A DNA stretch of 64,000 nucleotides from Hemiscyllium ocellatum (taxonomy: Eukaryota), in the NCBI RefSeq assembly GCF_020745735.1, contig NC_083433.1, positions 12,659,363 to 12,723,362 on the forward strand, in the 5' to 3' direction. Below are positions 1,992 through 63,426 of the stretch, in pieces. The position numbers were made by a program, and so were the translations under genes. The first letter of the stretch is position 1, and each line of letters starts with the position of its first letter. Under the pieces are notes generated by a model. That model worked only from the letters and a program-made list of their open reading frames with translations. It searched no databases and had not been told where the DNA came from.

Positions 1992-4900
1992 CTAACTGCT
2001 GTCCTCCAGCGAGAGCCTGTCAAACAGGTACTCTCCTAGCCCATTCTCAGGAGCTCCCAGACGCTTCAGGTTGGTGATGTAGTCCCCAAGTCGCTTGATG
2101 ATCTCAACCTCCTCATCCAAATAGTGGGTCTCCAGGAAGTCACACAGCTGGAAGGAAGGGAGAGAGAGTGTTAGATATTATAAGATTCTGTTTCTTTACA
2201 GCTTATTCTCCAATGTTGAAGTGGTTTCCTGCCTTGTGTCAAAGTTAAACCATTATGTTTCTCCCAGGTTGTTACACCACCTGATGATTCTAACAGTTTA
2301 CCAGGCAGTATGAATGTTGAGACCTTGTTGTGCAAGAAATTATTTGGACTGTAGACATTGAGGTAATGTTAATAGAAATGTAGTAGTTAGCCAGCTCCTA
2401 CAAGTGAGTGGATGTGATTTCATCATCAAAATGCAGGATAAAGTATAACCAGGGTCCACAAGGCGTTGCACACCCTCAGGTAAAGCAACTGAGCGTAGAC
2501 AGGCAGGAACAGGACACCTTCAGCAGTTCATAGTACAAAACACTAAAGGCCCAGGAGTGGGGCTTGAATCTAACACTGAGCTCAAGTTAGAACATACTAG
2601 AATATAGTGATATACAACAATGCTGGTTCCCCAATTGGTCTGTGGGTCTCTGCAATGATCAGGCCAGTGAGGTATTGCCCTGAGGGTGTGGCAGTGATGA
2701 GAATGAGGTGGCGGTGAAGCTTACATGAGGGTCAGTCTGGGCAGTGGCCAGTTGGTGTAGATCCAGCAAACTCTGGTTCACATTCTTCTCCAGCTCTAGG
2801 GCAACCTGCATTGCCTGCAGACTGTTACCCCACTCATCCCTCTCTGGCTTCTGAAACATGGAAACAAAGGACAGTTAAGGATCAGGACAGAACAATTACC
2901 AACTATTGGAGGTCTGCTGTACCTTGCCCACTTTACTTTCTCTTACTGAAGAGTTGGATTGAGAGATGCCTAAACATCACTAAGTTAGGGTACACTTGAT
3001 TAATGTACATTAAAGTGTGTCATCTTGGCCAGTACAGCAAGGTCAGACAGGCAAAGCTCCCCTTCAGGATGAGCAAACCCTGTTACTGATGGCTTGAAGC
3101 CCCATCACGAAAGCAGCCATTCCCCTCCCCAACATTCCCACCTTCACATCCTGGAGGAGGACTCTGCCTCCACGCTGATTCTGAAATTTCAGCAGCTTCT
3201 CTGCATGTTCCTGCTTCTCCTGGGACTGAGCTTTGAAGAACTGGGAGAAATGGTGCAGGGCAACATCATCCTGGTCAAAGTACGACATCTGAAAGAGAAC
3301 CATTTCCATCCCATTAAACACATCACTGGGCCCAATTCTTGTTGGCAACTGAAACCAACCCTTTTCCAGCTGCTGTCTGATCAGACCATGTTCAGTAAGA
3401 ATCCTTTTCTATTTCCTCAGGTAGATTGAAGATGCTCACCTAATGTCTATTCAATGGAAGGTTAGTCAGATGTACAGCATGGAAACAGACCCTTCAGTCC
3501 AACCCATCCATGTCAACCAGATATCCTATCCCAATCTACTCCCACCTGCCATTACCCAGTCCATATCACTTAAACCCTTATTCACATATCCATCCAAATG
3601 CCTTAAAAAAGTGTTACAATTGTACCAGCCTCCACCACTTCCCCCATCAGCTCATTCTATACACATACCACCTCCTGTGTGAAAAGTTGCTGCTTAGGCC
3701 TCTTTCTCCTCATCCTAAACCAATGCCCTCTAGTTCTGGACTCTGACCCCAGGGAAAAGACTGCCATTTAACCAATTCATGCCCCTCAATTTTGTAAGTG
3801 AAGGTCACCCCTCAGCCTCTGACGCTCCAGGGAAAACAGTCCCAGCCTGTCCTGCCTCTCCCTTAATTCAAATCCTCCAACCCTGGCAACATCTTTGTGG
3901 AATCTTCTGAACCCTTAAGTTTCACAACATCTTTGATAGAAAGGAGAGCAGAATTGCACATAATAATCCAGTGGCCTAACCAATGCCCTATACAGCCACA
4001 ACATGACCTCCCAACTCCTGTACTCCATTCTGACCAATAAAGGAAAGCATACCAAACGCCTTTGCTATCTTATCCACCTGCACCTCCACTTTCAAGTATG
4101 AACCTGCACTCCAAGGTCTTTGTTCAGCAACACTCCCAAGGACCTTACCATTAAGGTGTACAAGTCCTGTTAAGATTCACTTTCCCAAAATGGAGCACCT
4201 CACATTTAATCAGAATTAGAGTCCACCTTCCACTTCAGCCTATTGGCCCATCTGGACAAGATCCTTTGGAATCTTAGGTAACCTTCTTCACTGTCCACTA
4301 CTCCAATTTTGGGGTCATCTGCAAACTTACTAACCAAGTCTTATGCTCACATCTAAATCATTTAGATGTGAAAAAGTGGAGGACCCAGCACTGATTCTTG
4401 TGGCACTCCACTGGTCATAGGCCTCTAGTCTGTGAAACAACCTTCCACCACCCACCCACTCTACCTTTGAGCCAGTTCTGTATCCAAGTGGCTAGTTGTC
4501 CTGTATTCCATGAGATCTAACCTTGCTAGTCAGTCTCCCATGGGGAGACTTGCCAAACACCTTACTGAAGTCCATATAGATCACATCTAACACCACCCTT
4601 AAATCAAAAACCTCAATCAAGTTAGAGACATGATTTCCCATGCAAAGCCATGTTGACTATCCCTCATCAGTCACCACCTTTCCAAATATATACTGTCCCT
4701 CAAGATTCCCACCAGACTCAGTGGTCTATAGTTCCCTGGCTTGTCCTTAAAAGGTACACTACATTAGCCAACCACCTGTCTTCTGGCACCTCACCTGTGA
4801 CTATTGATGATATAAATCTCTCAGCAAGGGGCCCAGCAATCACTTCTCTAGCTTCCCAGAGCTCAGGTACACCTGATCAGGTCCTGGGGATTTATCCACC

Positions 4901-62092: not shown

Positions 62093-63426
62093 CTAGCTGC
62101 TGTCCTCCAGTGAGAGCCTGTCAAACAGATACTCTCCCAGCCCATTCTCAGGAGCTCCCAGACGCTTCAGGTTGGTGATGTAGTCTCCAAGTCGCTTGAT
62201 GATCTCAACCTCCTCATCCAAATAGTGGGTCTCCAGGAAGTCACACAGCTGGAAGGAAGGTAGAGAGAGTGTCAGATATTACATGAGAAGAGTCAGAATG
62301 TGGGAGTGATCAGCTCCTATGCAGCTCATTCTCCGACATTCAGGCGGTTTACAACTAAGCCATTGCTGGGGGTGGGGAGGGAGGAGTTTCACCACATTAG
62401 GATCACAGACAAAGGCAGTGGTCAATATGCATAGCAACATCCCATGGTGATTGGACAGTTTGCTGACAAGTACAGAATAAACATCTGACAAGATCCACAG
62501 GGTACATCACCAGCATCTCTCCCTTTGCTGCACCAATTTTGCCCCATGGAGTGGCTCTCCAATCTACAACATGGAGAATACAGAGGGACAGTTAGTCAGG
62601 GAAGGGAAAACTCCGTTTCAGCCAGATATTGACCAAATGCCAAAGGAGGATTTAGTGTTGTTCCCTCAAGATTCTTAAAGGCTTTGCTAGAAGTGTAGGA
62701 TATTCAGAAGTACATTAGTTTACTAAACAGTCAGTTTGTGGCTTTGCGATGATCAGGCCAGTGAGGTGTTGCCCTGAGGGTGTGGCAGTGATGAGAATGA
62801 GGAGGTGGTGAAGCTTACATGAGGGTCAGTCTGGGCAGTGGCAAGTTGGTGTAGATCCAGCAAACTCTGGTTCACATTCTTCTCCAGATCCAGGGCAACC
62901 TGCATTGCCTGCAGACTGTTACCCCACTCATCCCTCTCTGGCTTCTGAAACATGGAAACAAAGGACAGTTAAGGATCAGAACCACCAGCTGTTCCAGGTT
63001 GCTTTCACCTTGCACATTTGTCAGTGATATTAAAAGGAGCCACAACAGTCAGACAGGTCAATATATTCCTTACCATGGAGTGGAATTTAAAGAATTCGCT
63101 GCTCCGCATGCATCTCCCCTACACAAGGGATTGGAGTCTGGTCTATGGGGCAGATCCCAAGATCAGACTGACAAAACACGACTAGAACTTGAATTCCCAC
63201 ACCCCCTTCAGGATGTGAAAACCCTGTCACTGACGTGAAGCCACATCACGCAAGCTGCCACTCCCCCCAACATTCCCACCTTCACATCCTGGAGGAGGAC
63301 TCTGCCTCCACGCCGATTCTGGAATTTCAGCAGCTTCTCTGCATGTTCCTGCTTCTCCTGGGACTGAGCTTTGAAGAACCGGGAGAAATGGTGCAGGGCA
63401 ACATCATCCCGGTCAAAGTACGACAT
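62093..63426 (-). CDS. Ferritin copy 8, exons 2-4 (63280..63426, 62819..62944, 62093..62248); exon 1 beyond window end
   Basis: Open frame and canonical splice sites in the three visible exons. Confidence 0.9.

Follow-up and report, generated by a model that had tools for sequence, protein, structure and literature searches.

A tandem array of K62-type shark ferritins in Hemiscyllium ocellatum with an incomplete, L-chain-like ferroxidase centre and no detected iron-responsive element

A stretch of 64,000 nucleotides from Hemiscyllium ocellatum (contig NC_083433.1, positions 12,659,363 to 12,723,362, hereafter the window) belongs to a tandem array that is much longer than the window and whose unit is a ferritin paralog specific to sharks, which we term the K62 type. 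We found that these genes are real ferritins which, judged from profile matches and structure prediction, keep the ferritin fold, and that their ferroxidase centre, as read from the residues (human H ferritin numbering), is incomplete in the manner of L chains. The intact copies are under strong purifying selection and share a conserved promoter, and no iron-responsive element (IRE) was detected in the window. On balance these features suggest a non-catalytic, L-like cage subunit, and an origin independent of the tetrapod L chain is favoured by the best phylogenetic tree.

Eight ferritin genes were located in the window by tblastn with the exon peptides of copy 1, blastn with exon DNA and exon-by-exon alignment. 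They lie in tandem, all on the minus strand and spaced 9–13 kb apart, in repeat-rich DNA of 42%–50% GC without runs of N. Each comprises four coding exons of 34, 49, 42 and 51 codons, separated by GT-AG introns and encoding 176 amino acids. Four are full-length and intact (copies 1, 2, 3 and 6), one is intact but partial (copy 8), and the remaining three (4, 5 and 7) are pseudogenes. A preliminary description of this DNA had likewise counted eight tandem copies; the count stands, although it had left unsaid that only copies 1, 2, 3 and 6 are both complete and intact. The copies are as follows, in window positions:

Copy 1, 6992-1992, minus strand: intact; coding exons 6992-6891, 3288-3142, 2850-2725 and 2147-1992, every splice site GT-AG.
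Copy 2, 15897-10937, minus strand: intact; exons 15897-15796, 12460-12314, 12025-11900 and 11092-10937.
Copy 3, 23351-20527, minus strand: intact; exons 23351-23250, 22206-22060, 21434-21309 and 20682-20527.
Copy 4, 38062-30134, minus strand: pseudogene; start ATG changed to GTG, with E27D and a tyrosine-to-cysteine change in exon 1.
Copy 4, exon 4: frameshifted, 5' part lost, 8-nt gap.
Copy 5, 44098-39952, minus strand: young pseudogene; exon 2 with an in-frame deletion of 3 nt, exon 4 with a CGA-to-TGA stop (IIK*LG).
Copy 6, 56525-53094, minus strand: intact; exons 56525-56424, 54411-54265, 54007-53882 and 53249-53094.
Copy 7, 59698-56726, minus strand: pseudogene; exon 1 with a stop and a frameshift, exons 2 and 3 with indels, E61K, exon 4 ending after 24 codons.
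Copy 8, 63426-62093, minus strand: exons 2-4 intact (63426-63280, 62944-62819 and 62248-62093), exon 1 past the window end.

Within 56616-56815, exon 4 of copy 7 breaks off at 56726 and directly abuts the core promoter of copy 6, which is intact. The remainder of copy 7 and the spacer were removed by a deletion that left the copy 6 promoter.

All intact proteins carry E27, Y34, A57, Q60, E61, K62, E64, H65, E67, E107, D131, E134, Y137, E141 and I144. Measured against a complete ferroxidase centre (E27, Y34, E61, E62, H65, E107 and Q141), every intact copy has lysine in place of E62 and glutamate in place of Q141. K62 is present in all eight copies (copy 1 codon 3216-3214, minus strand), with helix B reading QSQEKQEH in seven and QSQKKQEH in copy 7. 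The segment HYLDEEV, which contains E141 (copy 1 codon 2111-2109), occurs in copies 1, 2, 3, 5, 6 and 8, is replaced by HYLDGEV (G141) in copy 7 and has been lost from copy 4. Every intact copy, like the K62 clade throughout, has D131 and E134 in the 3-fold channel, and of the acidic nucleation cluster E57/E60/E61/E64, positions 57 and 60 are alanine and glutamine, with E61 and E64 kept along with E67. Most of this agrees with the preliminary description, which had positioned K62 (3214-3216) and E141 (2109-2111) exactly in copy 1 and had correctly reported the incomplete centre, the retention of E27, Y34, H65, E107 and D131/E134, the A57/Q60 pair and a backbone of 176 amino acids ending in ...SS. 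It had assigned HYLDEEV to every copy with an undegraded exon 4, which fits the six copies listed. One of its statements needed narrowing: the lack of a nucleation patch applies only to positions 57 and 60 in this family, where E61, E64 and E67 are retained, and E60 is present in the lamniform orthologs.

The assignment to ferritins is supported by Pfam PF00210, matched at 118 bits by the shark proteins P0167 and P0162 and at 36 bits by window exon 2 by itself. An AlphaFold2 model of P0162 contains helices A–E with a mean predicted local distance difference test score (pLDDT) of 85, and aligns to 8pp3, 3ka6 and 3ajo (human H and frog M) with template modelling (TM) scores of 0.93–0.95 at 65%–70% identity. 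The full-length Pfam and the structural results come from proxy proteins 97%–99% identical to window copies (P0162, 97%), exon 2 having been the initial search query. The best solved-structure match of the exon 4 peptide was human L. In L chains K62 pairs with E107, and by this precedent it probably does so here, where it replaces, as in L chains, the carboxylate of E62 that bridges both irons. Y29 has been lost as well, and in carpet sharks Q141 has additionally changed to glutamate. The standard ferroxidase-null control for H ferritin combines E62K, H65G and K86Q (PMC4029007).

Relatives of the window proteins come from sharks of four orders (Orectolobiformes, Carcharhiniformes, Lamniformes and Hexanchiformes). 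The nearest are RefSeq models titled "ferritin, middle subunit-like" or "heavy subunit-like", with identities to window copies of 99% in Chiloscyllium plagiosum (to copy 6), 97% in C. punctatum, 95%–98% in Hemiscyllium and 93% in Stegostoma; their 90%-identity clusters contain 19–76 members in four species. Proteins of Mustelus, Heptranchias, Cetorhinus and Carcharodon follow at 78%–84% identity. Residues fixed specifically in the K62 type are T29, L33, S52, K62, Q98, V102, D/E105, Q119 and Q/E124. Other positions vary: E141 is restricted to Orectolobiformes, with Q141 in the K types of Heptranchias, Mustelus, Cetorhinus and Carcharodon; A57 is restricted to the bamboo/epaulette shark family (Hemiscylliidae); and the lamniform helix B reads H57-E60-E61-K62-E64. 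H65 is replaced by arginine in Heptranchias and Cetorhinus, by cysteine in a second Heptranchias gene (which also has E61A) and by tyrosine in one Carcharodon protein. The K62 type was absent from the hit lists for catsharks, Heterodontus, sawsharks, rays and chimaera, in which other ferritins of these animals were listed, and no ortholog from ray-finned fish, lungfish or coelacanth was seen in protein searches.

Intact window copies differ from each other at dN/dS (nonsynonymous to synonymous divergence) of 0.06–0.10 and dS of 0.09–0.19, and dN/dS is 0.14–0.31 against Stegostoma genes and about 0.2 against Heptranchias. The values among window copies indicate that the duplicates are old, individually constrained and not recently homogenised, and they rule out a mostly dead array. 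Since the protein is under selection while catalytic positions vary between orders, the pattern fits a non-catalytic subunit. It also bears on another explanation, that the protein is a working ferroxidase of a variant H/M type with a rearranged site composed of E27, E61, H65, E107 and a new E141, to which we give little credence. Such an enzyme would agree with the conservation of five of the seven classical residues in all intact copies, other hemiscylliids and Stegostoma, and E141 would put an extra carboxylate near the second iron site. However, the bridging ligand E62 is a lysine, and orthologs from other orders without H65 or E61 still evolve at dN/dS of about 0.2, so that selection preserves something other than the site. 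Solved frog M variants with glutamate at the equivalent of Q141 (3ka6 and 3ka9) also exist; they reportedly lose the fast reaction, although a literature search for the frog M mutant Q137E gave no hits.

The relationship of the K62 type to other ferritins was addressed with a maximum-likelihood (ML) tree of 86 sequences, repeated after dropping ten functionally suspect columns. All K62 sequences formed a single clade (support 100/99) with internal branching that matches shark phylogeny. Its sister group is made up of those H-like ferritins of cartilaginous fishes that are amplified and catalytically complete, one chimaera sequence among them (99/88, and 98/89 without the ten functional columns), and not the amphibian or fish M ferritins to which the preliminary description had likened the backbone; identity to these H-like proteins is 74%–77%. 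Canonical H ferritins formed another clade (96/78), and amphibian and sauropsid L chains a separate, long-stemmed one (100/100). The K62 class is therefore a monophyletic paralog and not a narrow lineage novelty, with only E141 and A57/Q60 being young; the label "lineage-specific" given to it previously suits E141, specific to orectolobiforms, but not a class distributed over four orders. Most H-like sequences share one catalytic-site signature, EYEHEEEHEEDEYQM. One of them, P0192 of Heptranchias perlo, has a K62 of its own in an otherwise complete catalytic signature, showing that E62K is recurrent in shark ferritins.

From this topology, we favour an origin of K62 convergent with that of the tetrapod L chain; for E141 convergence is certain, as this residue emerged within the K clade. 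The competing explanation is true orthology, with K62 having arisen once before the split of cartilaginous and bony vertebrates and the resemblance being inherited. We consider this unlikely. In its favour, K62, S52 and the loss of Y29 are common to the K62 type and the amphibian and sauropsid L chains, the lamniform helix B resembles that of sauropsid L, and some amphibian L chains retain E27 and H65 as the K62 type does. Forcing a clade of K62 type and L costs 7–11 log-likelihood units and is left unrejected by approximately unbiased (AU) tests (p-AU of 0.30, 0.34 and 0.27, the last without functional columns). Against inheritance, the ML tree joins the K62 type with shark H-like ferritins whether or not the functional columns are included, E141 demonstrably appeared independently, given the Q141 of the four non-orectolobiform genera, E62K arose separately within the H-like clade, and the search matches included no K62 ortholog from ray-finned fish, lungfish or coelacanth. 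The preliminary description had proposed a convergent L-like partner subunit as one possibility, and had named L orthology among the findings that would overturn its interpretation. Convergence is the reading favoured by the best tree, which disfavours orthology, but with p-AU of 0.27–0.34 a joint clade of K62 type and L is not rejected. The residue combination that it had called atypical is not unique, as E27, K62, H65 and E141 occur together in some amphibian L chains.

No IRE was found in the window, either with Rfam at the gathering threshold and at E<=10 or in a strict scan of both strands for C-bulge/CAGWGH hairpins. The same search found none in two Stegostoma K arrays, in the Heptranchias K pair or in loci of the amplified H-like class, and recovered as a positive control, in a sawfish (Pristis), an IRE_I scoring 42.6 bits that lies some 90 nt upstream of the canonical H gene. 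The K62 genes share an upstream block of 45 invariant columns, conserved between window copies 1, 2, 3, 5 and 6 and the Stegostoma and Heptranchias genes, which contains 2–4 ATTGG (inverted CCAAT) boxes, TGATGTCAT and a TATA box 78–118 nt before the ATG. At copies 4 and 7, both pseudogenes, no such block was detected. Its positions in the window are:

Copy 1 promoter block, 7052-7252, minus strand: ATTGG at -211, -164 and -126; TGATGTCAT; TATAAA at -78.
Copy 2 promoter block, 16157-15957, minus strand.
Copy 3 promoter block, 23638-23461, minus strand.
Copy 5 promoter block, 44390-44204, minus strand: retained in the pseudogene.
Copy 6 core promoter, 56729-56616, minus strand: TATAAG.

The leader between TATA box and ATG is short, GT-rich and unconserved. 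Unrelated promoters for each copy were ruled out by alignment, which places the conserved promoter further upstream and confines the divergence to the leader. With no IRE detected and a conserved TATA/CCAAT promoter of their own, translational control of the K62 genes by iron-regulatory proteins (IRPs) appears very unlikely. The repeated CTGATTGG-type boxes are presumably similar to the Y-box/CCAAT elements found in amphibian genes with oocyte expression.

K62-type and H-like proteins are encoded on the same chromosome-size contig in eight species. On contig CM060546.1 of Stegostoma tigrinum, two K arrays are located at 13.20 Mb and 13.85 Mb, and 20.8 Mb is the position of an H-like array. Both K loci, 650 kb apart, contain a pseudogene with identical stops, an identical intact gene and a third gene, which suggests that multi-gene blocks have been duplicated in Stegostoma as a higher-order event. 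On contig CM068676.1 of Heptranchias perlo (locus L001, 14544-21756), a gene for a Rac-like small GTPase (peptide including LLITYTTNDFPEEYIPTV) follows a tandem K62 pair; the K62 type is there a small pair at the array edge and not a large array. The K62 gene of Mustelus is flanked by a Frag1-domain gene. Among these neighbour genes of the K loci, no link to the neighbourhoods of human FTL or FTH1 was recognised. Tandem amplification is accordingly seen in distant sharks, in the eight copies of the window, the Stegostoma arrays, the Heptranchias pair and the clusters of 19–76 members.

Amplification of shark ferritins has already been reported. In its passage on ferritin copies, a preprint on the Greenland shark genome describes 155 "FTL" and 179 "FTH1" copies, in arrays aged 250 million years or more that form three clusters, are syntenic with those of the great white shark and are expressed specifically in ovary (Sahm et al. 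2024, 10.1101/2024.09.09.611499). The amplified array of the preliminary description is thus correct as to tandem amplification but not new, given the large, ancient and ovary-expressed arrays of that preprint. The same passage contains no residue-level or phylogenetic account, and we found no such treatment of shark ferritin classes in the literature searched. The K62 class appears not to have been described there, nor do its age, relaxed catalytic site, conserved promoter and probably independent origin.

Based on these results, we consider it moderately probable that K62-type proteins act as non-catalytic cage subunits of an L-like kind. Its residues indicate that the subunit is most likely catalytically inactive, with a structural or mineral-core role. 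It would then depend on a catalytic partner, for which the candidate is the linked, IRE-less H-like class a few Mb away on the same chromosome, and by analogy with other ferritins the two probably co-assemble. Together they would constitute a high-dosage, iron-independent ferritin supply, as a high-dosage synthesis independent of iron is indicated by the private promoter and the lack of a detected IRE, and by analogy with the Greenland shark clusters the ovary or oocyte is probably the site of this supply. In its fullest form the proposal is tentative, and we hold it with somewhat less than even confidence: sharks would have independently invented a catalytically dead L-type subunit (E62K and later Q141E, Y29 loss and A52S) and paired it with the amplified H-like ferritins in an IRP-independent two-gene system of tens to hundreds of copies, which provisions the huge yolky oocyte with iron.

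Several observations weigh against this interpretation. E27, E61, H65, E107 and Y34 are all retained in the Hemiscyllium lineage, so that some residual Fe(II) binding or oxidation may occur. Three of the eight window copies are dead, and the effective dosage is therefore lower than the copy number. The case for co-assembly consists of the H/L ferritin analogy and linkage. Expression in ovary belongs to the Greenland shark cluster, and "FTL" is a label of the preprint whose meaning may differ from the K62 type. The loss of catalysis and of iron regulation could also signal a change of function, with the cage co-opted outside iron storage, such as for an abundant oocyte protein that has a storage, protective or structural role. 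IRE loss, a degraded catalytic site, tens of copies and a reduced number of inner carboxylates (positions 57 and 60) would all accord with co-option, but the conservation of D131 and E134 and of the inner E61, E64 and E67 is best explained by iron still entering and mineralising, and nothing points to any specific alternative role; we assign this explanation only a very small probability.

Should the K62 type be independent of tetrapod L, as favoured here, a non-catalytic ferritin partner would have evolved repeatedly by the same residue changes, and an H/L-style division of labour would be a recurrent solution and not a one-off. Were it instead an L ortholog, the origin of L ferritin would be pushed back to the jawed-vertebrate ancestor. 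Under either origin, IRE loss and a private conserved promoter would make it a natural ferritin freed from iron-dependent translational control, and a protein with E27, K62, H65 and E141 may serve as a ready natural variant for probing the residues of catalysis and cage stability.

Other elements were identified between the ferritin exons of the window. Intron 1 of copy 4 contains a broken non-long-terminal-repeat retrotransposon (33390-37947, minus strand), with open reading frames for a CCHC zinc knuckle (ORF1-like), an apurinic/apyrimidinic (AP) endonuclease and the zf-RVT of reverse transcriptase. A reverse-transcriptase-like remnant lies in intron 1 of copy 1 (about 3900-4900, minus strand), one frame of which has, by reading, a typical reverse transcriptase motif of long interspersed nuclear elements. 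In intron 1 of copy 7, a tRNA-like sequence (58788-58861, minus strand) scores 30.7 bits in Rfam against a threshold of 29 and is probably the head of a tRNA-derived short interspersed nuclear element. Two long hairpins, at 57072-57166 and 54565-54686, have sub-threshold matches to several unrelated microRNA models on both strands and look like inverted-repeat elements, similar to miniature inverted-repeat transposable elements, in ferritin introns or spacers.

Among known systems, tetrapod L ferritins, including the amphibian and sauropsid "light chain, oocyte isoform", are like the K62 type in K62, E141, S52, the loss of Y29, the fold and the channels. K62 and E141 are the states of 19 amphibian and sauropsid L sequences, E141 is also present in human L, and some amphibian L chains retain E27 and/or H65 as the K62 type does. 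The K62 type differs in having A57/Q60 instead of an acidic pair, in its tens of tandem copies and in its position apart from L in the best tree. L ferritin mRNAs carry an IRE, whereas none was detected for the K62 type.

The amplified H-like ferritins, annotated as "heavy chain A/B-like" or "oocyte isoform-like", share with the K62 type the chromosome, tandem arrays, the lack of a detected IRE and the exon structure, at the 74%–77% identity given above. Most of them have a complete set of E27, Y34, E61, E62, H65, E107 and Q141 together with E57, whereas the K62 type lacks E62, Y29 and, here, Q141. The Greenland and great white shark mega-clusters, as described in the preprint passage, resemble the K array in their ancient tandem expansion, in two classes labelled FTL and FTH1 and in synteny between sharks. 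Finally, frog and fish M and human H ferritins are 65%–70% identical to the K62 type with TM scores of 0.93–0.95, and frog M shares its length of 176 amino acids and C-terminal ...SS; unlike the K62 type, these are active ferroxidases with E62 and Q141, encoded by IRE-regulated mRNAs.

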